NCBI GenBank assembly: GCA_038496445.1
Contig: JALMLS010000079.1
Coordinates: 158,758-222,757 of the forward strand
DNA: 64,000 bases
Reading direction: 5' to 3'
Origin: Trichosphaerium sp. ATCC 40318
Taxonomy: Eukaryota > Protista > Tubulinea
Part shown: positions 8,607-64,000 of the stretch, piece by piece
How positions within the stretch are numbered: position 1 is the stretch's first letter
Layout of the letters: every line of letters starts with the position of its first letter
Translations under genes and position numbers: made by a program
Notes under the pieces: model-generated
Database searches by the model: none
The model's input: only the letters and a program-made list of their open reading frames with translations
What the model was told of the DNA's origin: nothing

Positions 8607-10200
8607 ATGAAGCAACACGTCTCAATAATCATTCTTATCGCTGTAATACTTTCTATTATATCACCATGCGCATGCTTACCAAACCCTGGGTTCCTATTCT
8701 TATCGATACGTGATACTCTTGTCATTCAATCATCAGACTTGGCTTTTAACGGTACCATACAGACAAACACAACAACAAACCCATTTTTTTGACTATTTCC
8801 TCAACTATTTTGCTAACACTGTTTTCAGACTTTGGTGATACCCAATTTGATACTGGTATACGAGCAGAACTGGGTCCGGGTGCAGACACCATGGTGAGTA
8901 AGTGTAACTTTTTTTCGCCTTCAAAAAGTTGTTTACACTCATTTTAATCAGTACCTTCGTTGGATGGCCAAATGGTATTGTTTGGCTCTACAACATCAAA
9001 CAGAATAAGTATGGTTATATCGGTGAGAGCATTAGACAATACAGAGATTTGTTCTGGGCTTGTAAACACGGGGATTTCGGCTGGATTTTTTGTTGATGAC
9101 ACTGTATTCTTCGCAATGCAACGTTCTTCTACAGTGATCACCCGTTACCACCTTGACACCTCAAATGTTGATGATTGTATATCTGGGCCTATATCAACTT
9201 GTACAATTACACGTCCTTTCTCAAACACCCGAATACAAGGAAGTACGCAGTTTGTTAGAAAGGATAATTTTGTTTTTTGATTCTTTAAAAGCTGTTACTC
9301 TTTTCTCCAGTGTCACCCACGTGTCTTATGATTATTGTAGTGACTGGTGGAGGAAGTGAAATAATGTATCTTTCCATTGAAGGAGTTTTTAGTACTGCCA
9401 GTACATCCTTTTATGAAGTTCAAGTATCTGCTCTCTTTTCGGATTCTTGCGAACTTGATGTATCGTTACTTCCACAACTTGGAGATACAATCATGGGCAT
9501 ATATAGAATAACTATACTTGATGAGAATAGACTCCTTGCATCTTCTGGTGGTGACACAATTACAATTGATAAGGCGACTGGTACTACTAGGTTGTTTAAT
9601 TTCGCTAAACAGTCATGTGTTATAGGCGAACAAATGGCTTATTTTACAGCACCAATAGGTTCCCCTAATCTACAACCTACTTTTTATTCTACTACAGCGT
9701 TTTGTGCTCCACGAGTACGTCACTTTTAAACTTGTTTATTTTATCTATTCACAAACATGATTGTTTTTTAGATCACACCGGAGATGACCGCTTTAAGGAT
9801 TCAGTTATTATCTCAGTAAAGTACCAAGTTTCAGACAATAAAAATAAAGGTTCCAACCGAGTAGCATGCTTTCTTTGGGTAGCAAAAAAGGAACTTTTAA
9901 TTCCTTATTTAGCATCAACCCGTCGAATGAATATTCCGGCCAAATCCGCTTAAACAGTTATGTCCACTTATCCCTAACGTTAGGTCGCAAACAACGCTGT
10001 TTAGAAACAAATTACCGTATGAATCATTGCGTTGGTTTGTATCTGATGACGTGCTGTATAATGTGCACTACCTCCACCTGCCACCAACTTTCATTTTCCA
10101 ACCGATTCCCACCACAGTAGCATCAACAATACCAACTACATGGTCCATGATACATATTTACAAAACCCTAATCATGGCTGTATTTACCACCTTATACTGA
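8607..10200 (+). CDS. Secreted/GPI-type surface protein, copy A
   Basis: Signal peptide MKQHVSIIILIAVILSIISPCAC. Exons match ORFs 8960, 9310 and 9866. A Pro/Thr stretch and hydrophobic tail (..PIPTTVASTIPTTWSMIHIYKTLIMAVFTTLY*) end at TGA 10198-10200. Confidence 0.65.
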
Positions 10201-10871: not shown

Positions 10872-13435
10872 ATGATGAGCAACGACTCTACTGCTCTTTC
10901 AGTACTACTTTTTCTTTCTGTAGTCACTCTCGTATCTAGTAGTACGTTAACAAAGGATAAATTAAGTCACCATGGCACAGTTCTGATTGGTTTTTTTTAG
11001 CAACTTTTACAGCATCCATCATTGGAGATCAAACATGTCGCGAAGGATCAAGCCCAATGAATGTACCTACAAACACACTTTCTTGGGGAAGTAACGGAAG
11101 GTTCTCTGTCATAAAGTTCCGTATCTTTGATGACGAAGGTGGTTCAGTACCACGTGGAGCTACTATTGACTCTGCGACTTTAACTTTTATTGGTGAAAAC
11201 AATGGCGAATATCGCGGAAACATTTACAGATCGGCTGTTGATTGGCAAGAAAGTACTGTCAGTTACGCAAACTTTGGCCCTTCTCCTGGAGCCGATACAG
11301 CAGATTTCAGCGGTCCTTTGATAGCTGGATTTGATGATACACGAAGAAACCAACCTCTTACTATTGATGTTACAAGCGCAGTTTTAGCTTGGAATAGCGG
11401 TCAAAACAACTTCGGTTTTGTCATTGTACCAGGTAAGGGAGTATGTAAAATATTTTTACTGATGTTATGTTTAGATGGTAACGGTAGAGGCAACTCGGCA
11501 GTTTACTCTTCAGAATCACAAGATGATCCTGTTCTTGAGATTGAAGTCCGTCAAGAGTACCAAGGATACGATGGCTCTGATAACAACGTTAATAACCCAA
11601 CGTTTGGCGCTGTTAATACACCTCTGTTACGCCAAGTAATGAGTAACGGAGGTAACATTGTCATACCAACGTCATATGCTGATGGTCTATCTGCAGTACG
11701 CTAACATTGCCATTTTTTTGTTTGCGACTTTATTAACTTTAATCGCTAGCCACGTGAATTAGATTCTAGCGGTAACCCTCTTCCTTCAGTTCGATTAGTA
11801 AGTAATCTTGTTGCCGGTCATGTTGAACAAAGATCACGTGCAAGAAACCCAAGAAGGTAATTGTTTTCACAAAACAACTTTCATTTGTCGCGTTTATTCC
11901 CTTGTTCTCATACGGTGTACTCTAGACATACTGATTTATTGACATATTTTGGTCAATTCATCGACCATGATATTGATTTAACACCAGAAGGTGGTGATGA
12001 CTTCAATATTGTAATACCTGCAGGCGATCCAATCTTCACAGGAGAATTTCATTTTACAAGAGCAGTACCAATATCTGGAACTCCCGCAAATCAACCCCTC
12101 GAACATCCAAACGTCATCAGTGCTTACATCGATGGTTCGATGGTATACGGAAACAGTGTCGAGCACGCCAATAGTTTGAGAACAATGTACGTTCTGAAAT
12201 TTTATCAGTTTTTTTGTCGTTTTGAGATTAAGTTTATGTTTAGGAATAACGGACTTATGAAAACAAGTGCTGGTGATTTCTTGCCTTTTAATCTTGCTGA
12301 ACTTAACCTTGAAATGGGAAATATTGGATTTGTTTCAGATGAGGAAATATACGCTGCTGGTGATGTCAGAGTCAATGAAAACGCTGTTTTGACTTGTTTG
12401 CATACTCTTTTTGTTAGAGAGCATAACAGAATAGCTGGAGAGCTTCAAACAGATAACCCAACTTGGTCAGATGAGAGACTATTCCAAGAAGCTAGACGTC
12501 GTGTCATTGCTACTATACAATCCATTACAATGTATGAATGGCTTCCAGAGATCATTGGAAACATACCAAACTACACTGTACGTCCAGAGCTCCAACATTT
12601 TTTTCTCTGAAGTAGCCACCAACCTTACTCTTTCTTGATTTCAGGGCTACAACGACAATGTTAATCCTGGTATCATGAACGTATTCTCAGGAGCTGCATT
12701 CCGATTTGGACACAGTCTCATCAGCACTGTAATTCACAGAGTTGATCCAGACTTTCACTCTATCTCACAAGGACCTATACTCCTTCGTAACGCTTTTTTC
12801 AACCCTGTTGCTATTCAATACGGTATTGGTTCTATGCTAAGAGGCGTCATGATGCAACAACACGAAGCAGTCGATGTACTTGTAAGTGATGACTTGAGGA
12901 ACTTCCTATTCCAAAACGTTGGAGGCGGTGGAGCTCAAACACATGATTTGATATCATTCAACCTTCAAAGAGGTAGAGACTTAGGTCTACCTGACTACAA
13001 CACACTTCGTGCAGCATACGGTTTTTCAAGAATGAACGACTTCTCTGATGTATCAAGCGACCCTGGAACTGTAAATGCGCTTGCTACTGCATATGCGAGT
13101 GTTGATGACATTGATCCGTTCATAGGTGGTCTAGCTGAAGGTACTAGTTCATTACTTAACTATCACGTGACTTATTTTTATTTTTAGATCAACTTCCGAA
13201 TAGTAAACTTGGTGAGTTGTTCACAGCTATACTCAGAGACCAATTCACAAGATTGAGAAGTGGTGATAGATTTTGGTTTGAAAATGGACACTTTAGCGCT
13301 CAAGAGACTCAAGAGTTGTTGAACACTAAAATGCTTGATGTAATTATTCGTAATACTGACACAAGATCATCAACAGCTCGAGATTTTAGCTCTGCTTTTT
13401 CTCTAAGCGATTCATCAGATGTACCTAACTTGTAA
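10872..13435 (+). CDS. Secreted animal-type heme peroxidase (peroxidase-cyclooxygenase superfamily) with N-terminal DNRLRE/CBM96-like domain
   Basis: Signal peptide, then VPRGATIDSATL..DWQESTVSY..IDVTSAVLAW..NFGFVI (DNRLRE-like). Peroxidase motifs follow: FGQFIDHD (distal His), AGDVRVNEN..LHTLFVREHNR, AAFRFGHS (proximal His), NLQRGRDLGLPDYN, DQFTRLRSGDRFWFEN. Confidence 0.92.
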
Positions 13436-14314: not shown

Positions 14315-16070
14315 TTTATTTTTCTGTGGACTAACGCCACATCAAAAGAAGGTTGCAACAACGTTACAGAGATTACAGACAAAGTACGAATCGCTCTCAT
14401 ATTGTTATTAGTTAATTTAATGGTTAAAAAAGAGTCAACACTCAACAACGATGTTTCGCTCCTGTTGGATCTCCTACATTTATGGTCGTACCTGCACCAT
14501 AAGAATGAAGACAAGTTTTGTCACAGCTTGAAATAAATTGTTATTCCCAAAATTAATAGTGAAACTATGTGTTGTTTCTCGTTCTATCTGTTTTCAAGTA
14601 TTCAGAACAAGCCTCTTCTTTTTTATCAAAAACTTTCAATGTACTTTTTTTTCAAGTGATATTGTACCACCTAACGTTTGTCACTACAGTATTAAAAAAT
14701 ATCACGTGACATTTTATGATTTGTAGTATATTTGTTATTATTATTTTCCAGAAATCCTTTTTTTCAAATGAAGCAACACGTCTCAATAATCATTCTTATC
14801 GCTGTAATACTTTCTATTATATCACCATGCGCATGCTTACCAAACCCTGGGTTCCTATTCTTATCGATAGGTGGTTCAAATGGTGAAACTCTTGTAATTC
14901 AATCATCAGACTTGGCTTTTAACGGTACATACAGACAAACACAACAACAAACCCATTTTTTTGACTATTTCCTCAACTATTTTGCTAACACTGTTTTCAG
15001 ACTTTGGTGATACCCAATTTGATACTGGTATACGAGTAGAACTGGGCCCGGGTGCAGACACCATAGTGAGTAAGTGTAACTTTTTTTCAGCTTTAAAAAG
15101 TTGTTTACACTCATTTTAATCAGTACCTTCGTTGGATGGCCAAATGGTATTGTTTGGCTCTACAACATTCAACAGAAATAGTATGGTTGTATCGGTGAGA
15201 GCATTAGACAATACAGAGATTTGTTCTGGGTTTGTAAACAAGATTTCGGCTGGATTTTTTGTTGATGACACTGTGTTCTTCGCAAAGCAAAGTGATTCTT
15301 CAGTGATCACCCGTTACCACCTTGACACCTCAAATGTTGATGATTGTATATCTGGGCCTATATCAACTTGTACAATTACACGTCCTTTCTCAAACACCCA
15401 AATACATGGAAGTACGCAGTTTATTAGAAAGGATAATTTTGTTTTGGTTCTTTCAAAGCTGTCACTCTTTTCTCCAGTGTCACCCACGTGTCTTATGATT
15501 ATTGTAGTGACTGGTGGAGGAAGTGAAATAATGTATCTTTCCATTGAAGGAGTTTTAAGTAGTGCTGACAGTACATCCTTTCATGAAGTTCAAGTATCTG
15601 CTCTCTTTTCAGATTCTTGTGAACTTGATGTATCGTTACTTCCACAACTTGGAGATACAATCATGGGCGAACATAGAATAACTATACTTGATGAGAATAG
15701 ACTCCTTGCATCTGCGTCTTTCGTTGCTGAAACAATTACAATTGACAGGGTGACCGGTACTAATAAGTTTAAGTTCACATAGATTTCTGCTTTTTTCGCT
15801 AAACAGTCATGTGTTATAGGTGAGCAAATGGCTTATTTTACAGCACCAGTAGGGTTCCCTAATCTACAACCTACTTTTTATTCTACTACAGCGTTTTGTG
15901 CTCCACGAGTACGTCACTTTTACACTTGTTTATTTTATCTGTAAAACAAACATGATTGTTTTTTAGATCACACCGGAGATGACCGCTTTAAGGATTCAGT
16001 TATTATCTCAGTAAATTACCAATTTATGTACAATAAAAGTACTTTACTTGGAAGGTTTAAACTGAGTAGC
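14315..16070 (+). repeat. Direct duplicate of ~8213-9868
   Basis: Long near-identical stretches covering upstream region, exons and introns. Confidence 0.9.
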
Positions 16071-55454: not shown

Positions 55455-58400
55455 TCACATGTCTTGCAAGTTCTCTTTTGCACGAGAAAATTTGAACCTA
55501 CCCATTACATACGGAGAAGAAATATCCGCAAGCATAAATTGTGGGACCTTGTCAAACGAAATTACACAAGAAGGTAGACTACATCCAGTTTCGGCGTCGC
55601 TGTTCCTCTTGTAACTTAATTTCTTCAAATTGTAAGCCTTTTCTATACTTTCTTGTAGCATTAACATCCTCTCATCTCCTTCATCCATCGTAAATCCAGA
55701 TACATTAACAGATACACCAGGTGTATTACAAACAAGAAGTTGAATTTTTAAGATCGATCCAAAAAGACTTTCGAAGCAAGAAATGATGGAATACACAATA
55801 TTGTTAGGCTTGACAGCGATAACAATATTATATATAGTATGGCTATTAGTGGTATCAACTTTTCTGGTAATGTTGAGAGGAGATACGTTGTAATAGTTGA
55901 GCATTTCTCTTGTCTTCTCAAAAGCCGAATTGATTTTAAGGAAATCTGAAGATGAAAGAAAGACCTTCATTATTGGTTCATGGTCTTCCTTATCAAGAAA
56001 CCGAATAGCTCGTTGAAGTCCTCTAGGATCATTTAGTTCAAAAGAACTTAATTCTAAGATAATCATTAGAAAAGTAGTGCGTACGAGGTGTCAGATCACC
56101 AAAAAAACAAAACAAAAAAAAAAAATTAATAGAACGTACTTTGCGGTTGTTCCTTATTGTCGACTGTTTGTGTAGCTTGGCGTCCAACCGGTTCTTCTTG
56201 TTCTTTATGTTGTTGCTTTGTTGAATTAGACGATTCTTGGTTCAGATTCGGTTTTGGATGGCTTTCTTTCACATCGAGTGTAAACGAGTGTTGCAATTCA
56301 GCTGGAACACCTTGGACAAGCCAATCGCTTTTCTGTTGTACTTCTCTGGGAGGGTTATATTCGAATGGAATAAATTCATACGCTGTAGGTTTTACATCAT
56401 CACTTGTAGAGGGTAGTTGAGCAGAAACAGGTTTGTTTGGTTTGTAAGCATATTTTGTAAAGTCAAACTTTGGACTTTTGTTTTCTATCTTGTCTTTGTT
56501 TTGAACCAATTTGGCTTTGGTATTAGTGGAACTTGTTGGTGACACATGAAATTCTGTATCTTGTTTCTTCGCCTTTAATGAAGGGACACGAGGAGTAACT
56601 TTTTTTGTGATGACTCCTTTTTTTGGCCTTCTTGTCATTGGTGTCTTGTACGACTCTGACATCTTCTTCAATTTCTCTTCTCTTTGTTTTTCGTATGCTC
56701 TGTAAGCAGCTTCAAACTCATTCAAGTCATTCTTCCACATTTGCTTCAAAGATATTTTGGAAAGGTCGGAAATAGCTTTTCGCTTGTCTTCAAGCTCATT
56801 CGATACATTCTGGATGTTTTCACTGCTAATACAGCTGAAAGGAAGCTTTAAGAAATCAGTGTAGTCTACAGGGGTGACCTCTGGAGATGGTAATGCATCT
56901 TAGGAGAAGAGGTTAATATAGAATAAAATCAGTGTCAAAACAAAAGAAGAAATGCATTTCATTGGTTGTTACGTACCTTCACGGAGAGAAGTCACTGTTT
57001 TACGCATAGATTCGATGTCTTTCCCAAACAAATCAATCTTTTTGGTCGACAGGTATACAAGAAACTTGAGCTTTGCAGCAAGAACGCACTCTTCATGTTT
57101 GAGCCTCTTTAGCATAGATACCTATTTTCATGAACGTCAGTTGTACCTTTAGAAAATAATGTCACGTGTAAATCACGTGATGTTTTACGAGTTTACCTTC
57201 CTGTCAGCGTATCTAGAGAGCCTGTAATCATAAAACGCCTTCATAATATCTTCAATAGTATCATACTTTTGAATATTGCCATGATGATCAAAGAGATTAA
57301 TGTTGTTCCTTGATAAGGTTGTAGAAAGTCTGAATTTTTTGATAATCTCTTGATCAGACATTTCAAATAATGTAGGTACAGTAACATTAAAGGTAACTAA
57401 AAAGCACGTGTTTACATAAGACGCTGTTTCGAAAAACAAGAAAAGAGTAGGTAATATCTTTTTGACTCACCTTCATCAGGTACTCGTACTGGTACAGCAT
57501 ACTCCTCGATAATACCATAGCGGGGATCAGAGAGCTTATTGAGAGTATTTTTATAGTCGGTAATAGAATTGTTTGGAATCTCTGTTATGACCAAAGTCGT
57601 GTCATCTAAGCGATAAAAGATACCACTGTGAAAACTTGTAAGTATTTAAAACCAAAACATTAAACGTACCTCTTAACCCATAACTGCCTTTTTTTATTCC
57701 ACTCAATTTTGCCTTTGAACCCTCTATACCAAGGGTTCATAATCTGAAGCTCTTCACCGTCGAGTAATCGTCTATAAGAACAAGATCAATACATTAATGG
57801 AAAAACGTGACTCACCTTAAATTGTGTACAATTTCTATTGGATTAAATTGAGGCAATGAACATGATACTCCTTGGCCAATACCCTGTGTACCATTCACAA
57901 GTACCATAGGTATAATAGGTAGATAATAATCAGGTTCAATAGTATCTCCAGCGTCGACAAGATAATTCAAGAGAAGATCGTCTTTAGGATGGAATATTGT
58001 TCTTGTCAATTTAGATAGGTTGGTAAAAATATACCGAGAACTAGCATGATCTTTACCGGCATCATTTCTTGTACCGAACTGCCCCAAAGGTTCCAATAAG
58101 TTTATGTTATTGCTACCGATATAGTTTTGCCCCATACGTATGATTGTGTTTGTTAAGGAGCCCTCTCCGTGATGGTAAGCACTTTTCTCGCTGAGAATAA
58201 AATTAATAAGTATCAAAAAAGATGTCGCTGAAAATGTTGGCACCTCACATAGCCGCAAAGTTCTGCTACTTTAATTTCTTTTCTGCTCTTTCTTTTCAAA
58301 CAACCATAAAGTACTTTGCGTTGTGAAGGTTTTAACCCATCAACAATAGATGACACACAACGCTTGATATCAGCAATCGGATACTACATGTCATTTTTTG

Positions 58401-60212
58401 TTAGAATAAAATTCTTGAAATTCCTCTGGCAGTACCATTATCAACTCCTTGTCAATAAAGTCCTTAATGCTCACAGACAATGAAGAAGTATCCAAGTAAA
58501 TATCTGGGTTGTAAGTGCGCATCCAAGCCTTCCTTGAATTAATTTTATGTCGACTAAAAGCCATATCAATCGCATCATCATCTTGCTCATCTTATTGGGT
58601 TTTTAGTTGACAAAAATAGACTCATCACGTGATACATACTCGTAGGTAAAAACATAATCTTATGACGCTCTAAATTCGAAAAAAACTCGGTTGCTTGTAC
58701 ACTTGTGAATGTACCAAGACCTCTGGAGTATAGTGATTTCCATTGATTGACATCATTTGTTTTTTTCCATGCCTCAAATTCTGGAGCTGAATAAAAATCT
58801 AGCTTCTCACCATTTCGTTCTAGCTAAAGTATTGAAGTTAATATTTTCATAAAAGAGCGTTCTAGTGTACAATAACAATGGGTGTTATGAATTCAAACAA
58901 AAAGTTGGGAAGTTTCAATAACTCAGGCCAATAAAAGTGAAAAAAATTGATCATGAGTGCTTTGATGTGAGTCCCATCCACATCTTGGTCCGTCCTAAAC
59001 ATTACATGTAAAGAAATCAAGTACATGGATAACGGTAAATTCAAAAAGACCAGAGACGTACATTAGCATTACACTCCCATATCTCAAGTCATCAGTTGAT
59101 GTATACTGTTTACCAAGTTCAAGTCCAAGAGCGGTTTGTACGTTTTTTAGCTCCTCGTTCATACCTCTAGAGCTAACTCTAACATTCAAGGGTTTGCCCT
59201 GTAATGGGAATACACCGTAATATTTCTTTTGCTTAGTGGCCCGAATACCAGAGAGTGCCAGAGCCTATGATGTATAAAAAAAGAATGAACAAAATGTCAG
59301 CAACACGCACTTTTGCAGAATCGCCTTCAGTGATTATCAGAGTACATTTAGTAGACTCGCTTGTCCCTGCTTTTGGTGCATCTGATAGCTTTCTAACAGA
59401 AACTTTTTTTTTAATGTCACGTGATTTGCACGTTTGTTTTTTTACTGATTTTGTCTCGTTCTCTTTTTTTTCTGAAACATTAGCTTCACTCACATCTACC
59501 ACAGAATGAGTTTCTCTAAATTTCAAGAAGACTTTTAGTACCCTTCGCATCAAGCTTCTCAGCAATAAACTTAATAATACAAGAAGGAGCTTTAAGTATA
59601 TAGTTAAGAACTTGTGTTCGAATAAAGACTTACTTGACAGCGCCAGAGTATTTTTTCGTAGAGCGTCAATATCAACTTGATGACCTTCGTCTATACGAAA
59701 TTTAAGGATTGTGCCCGTTGTGATCAACGTGGGGTCACATTTAAGCGACACTGTATCGTTCTTTGTGAAAATATAACAATTCACTTGTCCACCGTTGGAA
59801 ACTTCAATGCGAACAGAAGAGCTAAAAGAAAAAAAGGGTCAGCAAAAACCGTTTAACCTGTTTTCTTAGAAACGGTGAATAGTACCTTATCGATAAAGCT
59901 TCTTTTATAAATGGTGGTGGAGGGCAGGAGCCTTTGGAGTCACCGCTGAATAAAACTACATAACAATTAAAAAAAACGCGCCAAAAAGCATGTTTGACGC
60001 GGTTTGTACGTTGTCTGCCTATCCAGAAGATGATTTCTCTGTCTCGAATGGTAATATTCAAAAAAGTTGGTTCTGCGTTTACTAAAGCACGTGTTATAAC
60101 ATCAAATACCCTATATACGTCATGTGGGCGTTGTTTTTTAACACTTTTGATTAAATTAGCTTTTTGATCTTGTGTAAGACTCGTCGCACTCTGGTTCTGC
60201 AGTAGTCTCCAT
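55455..60212 (-). CDS. Type IIA DNA topoisomerase-like protein: degenerate GHKL remnant, intact TOPRIM and WHD cleavage core, extra C-terminal domain
   Basis: CTLIITEGDSAK, GVFPLQGKPLNVR, LRYGSVMLMTDQDVDGTHIK, DGLKPSQRKVLY, AYHHGE, GQFGTR..KDHASSRYIFT (catalytic Tyr), IIPMVLVNGTQGIGQG, MWKNDLNEF. Likely start METTAEPE at 60212; alternative start at 60436. Confidence 0.9.
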
Positions 60213-60934
60213 TTTGTTGTCGAGTCAACTGCTTGTTTTGATATCGCCTTTGTCGAACTTGTTTAAGGCACGTGAATGCTTGTGTACCACAAACTAAGCA
60301 ATGACTGGAAAAAAGAGCTCAAGGTCGTATCAAGCACCAGGAGCTATTATACTAATTTTGATATCAGTGAATAATTATTGAATAAAAGTAGTAAGTTGAC
60401 CGAGAAAACACTAGATATTAAGTTTGGGAGATCCATACTTAGTACCTTTGATAATTTTGCTCTAAAAACACTGCAAGTAGCTGGGATACAAGTACTAAAC
60501 GCTGTTAATGAGTCGTGGCCTTCCTACCGCAGATGGGTATGATTAATCGAGTTTACAGCTGCAATTACGATCTATCGCACTATTGTAGCCAATTGCATCA
60601 ATTGTTGCACAAATCACCTCGAACTACGGAATTCACATTTTTAATAGGGCAACGGTACCTCGTATAGAGACTTCTAATACGTCTAGACACCAAAGCGGTA
60701 AAAAGAAAGCCAAATCGAACAGAGGTTAGTAAATAAGTTTAAAACTACGCAAATAATCAATGAATTCGTTCGTAGGTCATAGAAAACGCGAAAGCGAGGA
60801 TACATACGATAATTACAGCAACAAAGATGATAATTCAGACTTAGGTGGTAAAAACGAACATACAAAGGTGTGAGGCGTTACATTTAGTAGTTTAAAGCTG
60901 TTTATACTACAATGAAACTCTCGCTGTATTGAAT

Positions 60935-61708
60935 ATGAAGGCACGCAGCGGAAGAGATATGAGGGAGAGACGTAAATCAGATAAAGAACCTGTAACTGAA
61001 CCGAGATCCAGGGTTGTAAGAAAACATACGTGAGTAGTTGCAAGAGAAAAAAAGATAAATGAAAAAAAAAAAAAAAAAAAGAAGTCAAGCTTGACAACGT
61101 TTGAATATCACGTTGATATTTTTCTCTAGATTTGAAAAAACAGTTGAATCTGAACCTTCTCAAAAAGATCTTGATAAGAGAAAACGAAGGTACGTTTCAA
61201 GAGCACGTTGTTTAAGAGAGTGTATTGTTTTTTTGCCAAGACGACACGAAAAAGTGAACACAGCCGCCTGACTATTCGTTTAGATACAACGCAATTAAAA
61301 AACGGAAAGTCCCCCATAATGGATCAGAGAACTCTACTATAATACAAGGAGTTATTGTACCTGAGATTGATCAAGTACGTTTTCTGAATGGGAATATACC
61401 TACACGTCATTTTTTTTTCTCTGGATGGTAACTAACGTTTGATTTAGCTTATGAATGATCCAAAGAATGAGAATGTTAAAGACCTATTGGACCGCTTTAT
61501 TACCTCTGTTACTAATTTAGAGCAACGACAAGCTGGTATCGTAGACAGCATGTTTATTCAATTTATGCGAGCAATACAAAAGTACACTTACTAACAATTC
61601 TGTTTTTTTCTTACCGTCGTGCTTTTTAGGAAGCAAGGTGATCTTCGTCTTGGGGTTAGTGTAGCTATTACTCCAGATGCACCCGTCAGTGAAGTAGCTC
61701 AGTCTTAA
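60935..61708 (+). CDS. Hypothetical basic, probably nuclear protein
   Basis: Five exons join in frame via GT-AG introns (..KDLDKRKRR/YNAIKKRKV../LMNDPKNENVKDLLDRF../KQGDLRLGVS..AQS*). Confidence 0.5.
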
Positions 61709-62827
61709 GCGGTGGCGTGCTCGTGTAAATGTAGAGGAGCAGAATGAAAAGCCATACTTTTTGTAAATAAATTTTATATTGTTTTGATCTCTCTTTCGAC
61801 CATCATGATACTCCAAAGCAAGATAATTGCCGTAATAGTGAGCACAGTTCTATATCTCAGTATGAAGGGTTTAAGTTATGAGAAGTTGCTTACTGTTATT
61901 ATCCTCAACGATTCGTAAAGGAAATGAACACGTTTTATGCCGATCTGATAAAAGAGGTGACGTTTCATTACCGACTTAGTATAAATTACCCTCCCTAAGG
62001 AGGTATGGTAAGCACTTTTTAAATTGTAAGGAAGTACTGTTTTAAAAGTACAGTGTTCACTATTTTGTGTAAAGAAAAATAAAAAGTTAAAAAAGGGAGA
62101 AACTTGGACTGATGTATGGAGACAGAGTACCAGTTGAGTAGGTTTTTAGGGTAAGCGTTCACTTACCTTTTTTGTGACTAACTGCCAATAAGGCAGATTT
62201 ATCTGTGTTTGCTGTAGCGCTTGTGTCGGGTAGTACTAGAGAAGTTCGGGTAGTTATTTCGGCGTATGGCGGTTGGTCAGCCCCCGAATATAGTATCTTA
62301 CCCATGTGACCTCTCTCATGGACTCTAGTGATACTGTATACGCTTTTAAAATAGTTTCTCGCGTGGAGGGCCGACTCTTGGGCTTTTCTTAACTACTCTT
62401 ACGTTGTTATCCTTACTACCCTTATAAGCTTTTTTTAGTAGTAGCGGTGTTACAACGGTGCGCTAGTATCACACTCTAAAACAAGTGTATCACAATATAA
62501 TAGGTTTGAGTTTTAAAAAAACCGTAACTTCAGTTGTACTCAATGAAGAACATCCAGTAACTATTTTACCAAAAAAAAATCACTTGGCTCGTCGTGTTTT
62601 TTTCTTTTTTTTGAGCACTGTTAGCATATTTTTGTACCGCCTTACAGCTCATGTAAATCTCTCCTTTAAGTTTTAATGTATCAACATAGTAACTAAGAAC
62701 AACTTCGCACCTAAAAAGGGCTATACACAAGTTTTTTAGGTAAATTTCCAGAACGGTAAAAAATGTTGATCACAAATTCTCCTCTCCAACACTAGCTACC
62801 ACACCTCACCAAAACGCTATAACTACC

Positions 62828-64000
62828 ATGGACGGAAGAATTATAGCTTTAGTGTGTCTATGTACCTTCGTATCACTCATATCAGCTCATGGACGCCTTA
62901 CAGTACCTGAAACAAGGGACGTACAAAACGGCAGACGTATTGACCAGCAACACGCTCCAGTATTCCTTCAAAACGGCGATTGGGTATCAGGACACGTGTG
63001 CAGAGATCTTCCTTTTGTCGGTTCAACAGCAACGTACCAAGCCGGAGAAACTTACTCAACTGAATGGTTCTTCGAAGCAAATCATCCTGGAGATTGCTTT
63101 TTCTACCTCTCCTTCGATAATGAACAAACTTGGGCTAAGATAGCCGAGATCCGCGATTGTCACCTCATAAGTGGATGGGATATGTACATTCCTTCTTGGG
63201 TTCCTAGTGGACCTGCAGTACTTCGCTGGGAATGGTATGCTCTTCAACAAGTCGTCAATGTTGAGCACTATCTTCAATGTGCCGATGTCACTATCACTGG
63301 CGGGAACACAGGAGCTGTTTCATGGACCCCAGTTGTTACTATCCCTGGTCACCTTCCTTTGGACGCTAGCGGCTACAGACGCGTGTATGATGTAGGCGCT
63401 CCTTTCTTCTTCACTGGACCTGCAGTGGCACAGTTTATGTCTGGTGGTACATTTAGTCCTACTAATCAACCAGTAGCACCACCACCAATGAGTGGTAGTA
63501 CTCCTACACCATCCGGTGCCGCTTTTTGTCCAACTATTTCAAACGTTGTAATCAACAGTACGCCTTTGGTGTTTCGTTCTGCATTTTTTTTACTGTATTT
63601 ACTTTTTCTTTAGACTTTGGCACAAGTATGAACGTCCTTGTATCTCTCACAGCACCATCAAGTGGCGCTCCAGTAAGGTCTATAAGAGTAAGACAAGTAT
63701 CTCCATCTGGAGCTACAACGGACAATTGTTGGTCATCTACTGGCGTAGTTGCCTCTGCATCAGCCACTGAAACAGGCACTAAATTCGTATGTGCTGTTTT
63801 CGAAAACGTTTTTTTTGACTGATAACTAACCTATTTTTTTAGATCAGCTTGTACAATCCTTGGCCAGCAGGTACTGAGATTATGGTGATCGGATGTGCTT
63901 GGGATCTTGGCGATGACAATATTGCAGTATCTGTAATAGAAGTAAATGGTAACGCATGTTAGCACTGTTTAAGTAATAAATATCCATCTTTTCAGTGAAG
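62828..64000 (+). CDS. Lytic polysaccharide monooxygenase (His-brace copper enzyme) with linker and further C-terminal domain; runs off window end
   Basis: Signal peptide ends ISA followed by His1 (HGRL); second His in ANHPGDC; LRWEWYALQ..EHYLQCADVTI; Pro/Thr linker; further exons to the window end. Confidence 0.85.

Follow-up and report, generated by a model that had tools for sequence, protein, structure and literature searches.

It is not settled why type II topoisomerases spend ATP on reactions that are energetically downhill. The answer that experiments now give is that the ATPase shields the genome from the cleavage core (Bandak et al., Nucleic Acids Res 2023, PMC10853770). Can such a core be kept in a genome once its ATPase is gone? 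A stretch of 64,000 nucleotides from the protist Trichosphaerium sp. ATCC 40318 (contig JALMLS010000079.1, positions 158,758 to 222,757; hereafter the window) raises this question with a minus-strand gene of 18 exons, joined across 17 GT..AG introns of 35–86 nt, whose 1265 codons and one terminal stop specify a protein of ~1265 aa. This protein derives from Top2; its cleavage core is complete, but it lacks a working ATPase and transducer. An earlier note on the same DNA had read it as a repurposed Top2 with an intact core and a crippled GHKL ATPase domain; the architecture of that reading, with the core kept and the ATPase and transducer absent, stands, and the crippled GHKL domain has weak statistical support. 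A Top2 core that nature maintains without an ATPase would put the genome-protection idea directly to the test: either the cell tames the core, whether by targeting, by a partner or by expression at particular stages, or it makes use of the breakage.

As had been claimed, the core is intact: EGDSA, DQDVDG, PLQGK, YHHGE and SSRY all occur on the minus strand. Aligned with 50 canonical Top2 cores, the protein keeps 101 of the 109 near-invariant columns (those at least 95% conserved), and every catalytic feature checked is retained in its column, namely the Glu of EGDSA, the Asp residues of DxDxD, YHHGE, GQFGTR and the Arg-Tyr pair. EGDSA (59328–59314) and DQDVDG align to columns conserved in all 50 canonical proteins, and SSRY aligns with the conserved RY found in 49 of them, which makes Arg537-Tyr538 the catalytic pair, with the codon of Tyr538 at 58033–58031. 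The Q of PLQGK is unremarkable, as that position is K or R in different eukaryotes. The largest exon matches residues 753–876 of human TOP2A at E 3e-45. Identity to canonical proteins is 0.55 in the TOPRIM domain, 0.60 in the winged helix, 0.37 in the tower and 0.24 in the C-gate, compared with 0.40 for the tower and 0.31 for the C-gate among the canonical proteins themselves. Domain by domain, identity reaches 76–92% (0.76–0.92) of the canonical-to-canonical level; of the core domains the C-gate has diverged furthest (ratio 0.76), and the identities of tower and C-gate stay inside the range of the canonical proteins.

Like canonical Top2 (human TOP2A, PDB 6ZY5; yeast Top2, PDB 4GFH), the window protein has a TOPRIM domain, TOPRIM_C, a winged helix with Arg-Tyr, a tower and a C-gate, with 55–60% identity in the TOPRIM and winged-helix domains; unlike canonical Top2, it has no GHKL ATPase, transducer or QTK loop, adds a C-terminal module of 198 aa and sits on a long branch. 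The dimer interfaces at the DNA gate and C-gate are retained, and these, together with the divergence of the C-gate, would also suit a non-catalytic or modulatory derivative, which might clamp DNA or might join canonical Top2 as one protomer of a heterodimer, a one-armed enzyme of altered activity. We consider this quite improbable, because all the catalytic residues checked are kept, and they would be needless for a purely structural role.

The gene model was built from anchored exon peptides and an enumeration of the GT..AG introns that keep the frame, in a eukaryotic sequence context of 36–41% G+C with very short introns. Its least certain parts are the first intron and the junction between 59634 and 59495. 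The start ATG at 60212 enters the main frame only after removal of a 46-nt intron (60189–60144), which is needed because no in-frame ATG is available without splicing. At the 59634/59495 junction several splice solutions are possible, and two introns of 44 and 46 nt were chosen because the small exon between them carries on the alignment to the canonical transducer helix. The interval first proposed for the gene, 57800–60212, was right in place, since all the motifs quoted lie there on the minus strand, but not in extent: the gene reaches 55455 and is twice as long, taking in the tower, the C-gate, a Lys/Ser-rich tail, an 86-nt intron and the 198-aa module. The frame, earlier described as open across ~15 introns, is open throughout across all 17, and a predicted spliced frame of this length argues against an old pseudogene. 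The splice sites of the gene are unusual: most donors read GTAC(G/A/T)N or GTG(A/C)N, with GTACGT used five times, and the 17 acceptor sites comprise 11 TAG, 5 AAG and 1 CAG. Head to head with the gene, ~550 bp from its start, lies a small intron-containing gene (60760–61720, plus strand) for a Lys/Arg/Glu-rich protein; the arrangement of the pair implies a shared divergent promoter region.

The region ahead of EGDSA is short, as the earlier note had it, with 210 residues in the model compared with 420–500 in 31 canonical Top2 proteins. A tblastn search of the window with canonical Top2 proteins gives no match for their residues 1–412, even at E 10. Pfam, applied to the gene as a check that the earlier note had proposed, matches neither HATPase_c nor DNA_gyraseB, and by this measure the ATPase and transducer are absent. 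A hidden Markov model (HMM) of 453 positions, built from 15 canonical N-terminal regions, matches the spliced protein only at positions 377–451 (E 1e-18), which run from the last transducer helix through the linker to the beginning of TOPRIM, and a six-frame scan of the whole 64-kb window with the same HMM matches only positions 385–445. As a positive control, six-frame scans of two canonical intron-rich Top2 loci from public assemblies tile HMM positions 20–452, with E down to 1e-34; the method is sensitive to split exons, because the ATPase exons of both loci were recovered. Because canonical ATPase regions share 46% identity on average, the loss must be particular to the N-terminal part of this protein. 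Nor is there room for the ~230 missing residues or for hidden exons, because the 5′ introns measure 44–64 nt and the opposite-strand neighbour begins so close upstream.

What survives of the transducer is its last helix and the linker (residues 147–210). The claim that the gene has no transducer or QTK loop holds by Pfam and HMM, apart from this final helix and linker. The ATP-lid (GGRNGYGAK) is missing, as had been noticed; no G1 box or QTK lysine is found in the polypeptide either, and the Glu of the N-box is replaced. Because it has no ATP-lid, G1 box or QTK lysine, the polypeptide cannot hydrolyse ATP as Top2 does. Database proteins with a short N terminus before EGDSA were considered as analogues and rejected, as they are truncated models that still carry the transducer/QTK segment. 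That the locus is known from a single assembly would allow for a normal TOP2 stripped of its ATPase exons by mis-assembly, an artefact that we regard as very unlikely: the region has no Ns or breaks, the N-terminal exons are contiguous, spliced and open, and a plausible ATG stands next to the divergent neighbour gene.

What, then, are the 146 residues that precede the remnant helix? Pfam gives no match for them, and hmmalign and global hhalign of the N terminus give no alignment. HMMER aligns YRVFDVI(TRA)LVNA alone, at E 0.13, to the N-box LYKIFDEILVNA, with Val at the position of the catalytic Glu and the Asn kept. The motif, YRVFDVITRALVNA at 60115–60074, had been singled out earlier as standing in place of KIFDEILVNA with the catalytic Glu lost, and the Val at the Glu position bears this out; FWIGRQ (60028–60011) and TGTILKFRID (59718–59689) are also present as quoted, and KLSDAPKAG follows at 59391–59365. 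In shuffle tests, which set the observed Smith-Waterman score with cheap gap extension against the scores of shuffled sequences, the region reached z 2.1 for its mean score with 15 canonical GHKL domains (13 of 300 shuffles as good), z 2.7 with a profile of 33 GHKL domains (3 of 200) and z 2.3 with a GHKL consensus (25 of 1000). Overall this is z 2.1–2.7 with p about 0.015–0.04, for cheap-gap alignments only; these alignments are colinear, and their details differ from those of the alignment first proposed. A language-model search with exon 4 points to a ‘Topoisomerase VI fragment’ cluster, whose score of 0.81 is often matched by shuffled proteins. The domain had been called a recognisable but crippled GHKL. 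Recognisable it is not, given that Pfam and HMMER find nothing, but a weak colinear likeness that beats most shuffles is there, and on these alignments the N terminus may plausibly have arisen through deletion and decay of a GHKL domain. The N-terminal exons lie inside open frames of 146 and 201 codons in DNA of 37% G+C; because frames of this length stand in AT-rich DNA, they suggest that the region is kept as protein.

The retained helix and linker, the N terminus maintained as an open frame and a core conserved as in working enzymes would all fit the core subunit of a split enzyme, which pairs non-covalently with a separate GHKL-plus-transducer protein to give an ATP-dependent type IIA enzyme with a layout like that of type IIB (Top6B/Top6A). 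Here the docking site would be the 146-aa N terminus together with the last transducer helix. We think both the split enzyme and this docking site unlikely, though worth keeping in view; a clean gene fission would leave no degenerate N-terminal remnant on the core. ATPase and cleavage reside on different polypeptides, as this explanation demands, in GyrB/GyrA, ParE/ParC, phage T4 gp39/gp60/gp52 and Top6B/Top6A, but in the bacterial and T4 enzymes TOPRIM belongs to the ATPase subunit. It is type IIB enzymes that are divided between transducer and TOPRIM, a layout that to our knowledge has not been described for type IIA enzymes. If a separate ATPase-gate partner does pair with the core, this would be, as far as we know, the first type IIA enzyme split at the transducer–TOPRIM boundary.

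At the other end of the protein, beyond the C-gate and the Lys/Ser-rich tail, a protein search with the 198-aa module finds no homologues. Its Atlas language-model features lie nearest to GDH_2nd (PF23152) clusters, which belong to large NAD-glutamate dehydrogenases, and 10 of the 10 best family matches agree, at a score of 0.90 that some shuffled proteins also reach. A single-sequence AlphaFold2 prediction of the module has a predicted local distance difference test score (pLDDT) of 38 and is unusable. The coordinates of all these parts are collected in Table 1.

Table 1 Parts of the Top2-like gene, in positions of the window
Feature	Position	Strand	Basis
Whole gene model	55455–60212	−	Splice enumeration, assembled and checked
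N-terminal ~146 aa (exons 1–4 and start of exon 5); orphan or vestigial GHKL-like, open frame	59567–60212	−	No Pfam match; HMMER E 0.13; shuffle tests
N-box-like motif YRVFDVI(TRA)LVNA = YRVFDVITRALVNA	60074–60115	−	The one local alignment that HMMER gives with the canonical ATPase profile
Remnant of last transducer helix and linker into TOPRIM (residues 147–198)	59365–59566	−	Canonical HMM positions 377–451, E 1e-18; six-frame HMM positions 385–445
TOPRIM domain carrying EGDSA, PLQGK and DQDVDG, interrupted by two introns	58871–59328	−	PDB match to Top2 TOPRIM; conserved motif columns; 55% identity to canonical proteins
TOPRIM_C region	58436–58823	−	Pfam PF16898, E 1e-13 and 1e-14
Winged-helix DNA-gate domain with YHHGE and Arg537-Tyr538	57816–58383	−	Pfam PF00521 (DNA_topoisoIV), E 1.6e-45; motif columns
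Tower and coiled-coil C-gate	56500–57771	−	tblastn to canonical residues 844–1190
Lys/Ser-rich low-complexity tail	56140–56500	−	Translation; no Pfam match
Extra 198-aa single-exon module, joined by 86-nt intron (56139–56054)	55455–56053	−	Splice enumeration

Relatives were sought with single exons. A HMMER search with exon 12 (57816–58192) against 1.84 billion representatives returned 5906 Top2 relatives, with best identities of 57–67%, and among them only canonical or truncated Top2 and no protein of the same architecture; its two top matches were discarded as gene models with a duplicated segment. Against 90% clusters the same exon gave fragments only, at no more than 68% identity, and in a metagenome scan it gave only canonical, apparently intronless Top2 loci at 62–69% identity. 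The metagenome scan with the N-terminal exon 4 returned nothing, and neither did an exact look-up of the open reading frames (ORFs). The two best fragment matches were rejected as relatives, since their contigs carry ordinary Top2 genes with ATPase exons. Both contigs, Logan SRR25394087 (3449–8087) and SRR25399869 (7504–12473), are intron-rich and eukaryotic, and they share a gene order in which the canonical Top2 stands beside an opposite-strand gene for a P4-type phospholipid ATPase.

On the strength of its sequence, we call it an even matter that this is a real and probably functional gene, a diverged eukaryotic Top2 derivative without an ATP motor that would be independent of ATP if it acts alone. 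Such a protein would pair into a homodimer at the DNA gate and C-gate, as any Top2 does. By analogy with Top2 enzymology, it would bind and bend one duplex and then cleave and religate it by means of Tyr538 and the Mg2+ site of TOPRIM, and a second duplex would not be captured, there being no ATP-driven closure of the N-gate. Left alone, the protein would be an ATP-independent enzyme with weak relaxation and decatenation and a strong tendency to leave breaks, and the 146-aa N terminus and the C-terminal module may serve regulation, targeting or partner docking. More specifically, and only tentatively, a natural ATPase-less type IIA core could be either a regulated ATP-independent break and religation enzyme or, within a split Top2, the cleavage subunit to which a separate ATPase gate docks, with the C-terminal module for targeting or control. 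A function in programmed breaks is speculation.

Several points weigh against a functional motorless Top2. No RNA run is listed for the locus, and its transcription and splicing are predicted only. No end branch in a maximum-likelihood tree is longer than that of the window protein (1.18; the median is 0.5), for which the tree gives no sister with support. No ortholog or protein of the same architecture was found in the representative, 90%-cluster or metagenome searches. The conservation of the core could be inherited if the gene was recently copied, in part, from a divergent parent outside the sampled sequences, and it would prove purifying selection on the copy only if the ATPase was lost before the long branch. 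A natural core without an ATPase is also expected to be genotoxic, which calls for tight regulation or a partner instead of free-standing activity.

The missing RNA runs and orthologs would equally be expected of a young partial duplicate or unexpressed pseudogene, in which the 3′ two thirds of TOP2 were copied beside unrelated 5′ sequence too recently for decay; the N terminus, not significantly GHKL-like by HMMER, could then be that unrelated sequence. This is improbable in our judgement: 17 of 17 introns keep GT..AG, the frame is open over all 1265 codons, the N-terminal exons occupy the two long open frames in AT-rich DNA, and the weak colinear GHKL likeness implies a long divergence of the N terminus while the core stayed intact.

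Is there a precedent for a functional Top2 derivative without its motor? Caenorhabditis elegans CIN-4, the subject of a paper by Stanvitch and Moore (Genetics 2008), is reportedly little more than a Top2-related catalytic core without an ATPase domain and is needed for centromere resolution. An ATPase-less Top2 paralogue would have a natural precedent in it; it is reportedly a short, very TOP-2-like recent copy, whereas the window protein is full length and diverged and has extra modules. Spo11 with TOPOVIBL is alike in concept, in that its type II cleavage unit is no longer coupled to a GHKL ATPase that works and a degenerate relative of the GHKL domain has been kept, but it belongs to family IIB and not IIA, its degenerate GHKL is a separate subunit, and it is part of the meiotic break machinery. 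The best functional analogue is an engineered human TOP2B core, likewise a cleavage core without an ATPase, which has weak ATP-independent relaxation and decatenation activity, is a potent DNA-damaging agent and raises recombination in yeast ~50-fold (PMC10853770). The TOP2B core is a laboratory truncation; the window gene is a genomic architecture, known from sequence, that adds the 146-aa N-terminal region and the C-terminal module.

Elsewhere in the window, the plus strand at 62828–64000 encodes a secreted-looking protein in which a signal peptide is followed by His-Gly, with a Pfam match to AA9 (lytic polysaccharide monooxygenase) at E 3e-11; the window ends before the gene does. ORFs at 11861–13187 (plus strand) carry motifs of the animal-haem-peroxidase type, seen by eye only (FGQFIDHDIDLTP; RVNENAVLTCLHTLFVREHNRIA). 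Two further plus-strand ORFs ~6 kb apart, at 9310–9729 and 15132–15782, have in common a long stretch of near-identical peptide (SPTCLMIIVVTGGGSEIMYLSIEGV...), which suggests tandemly duplicated genes.

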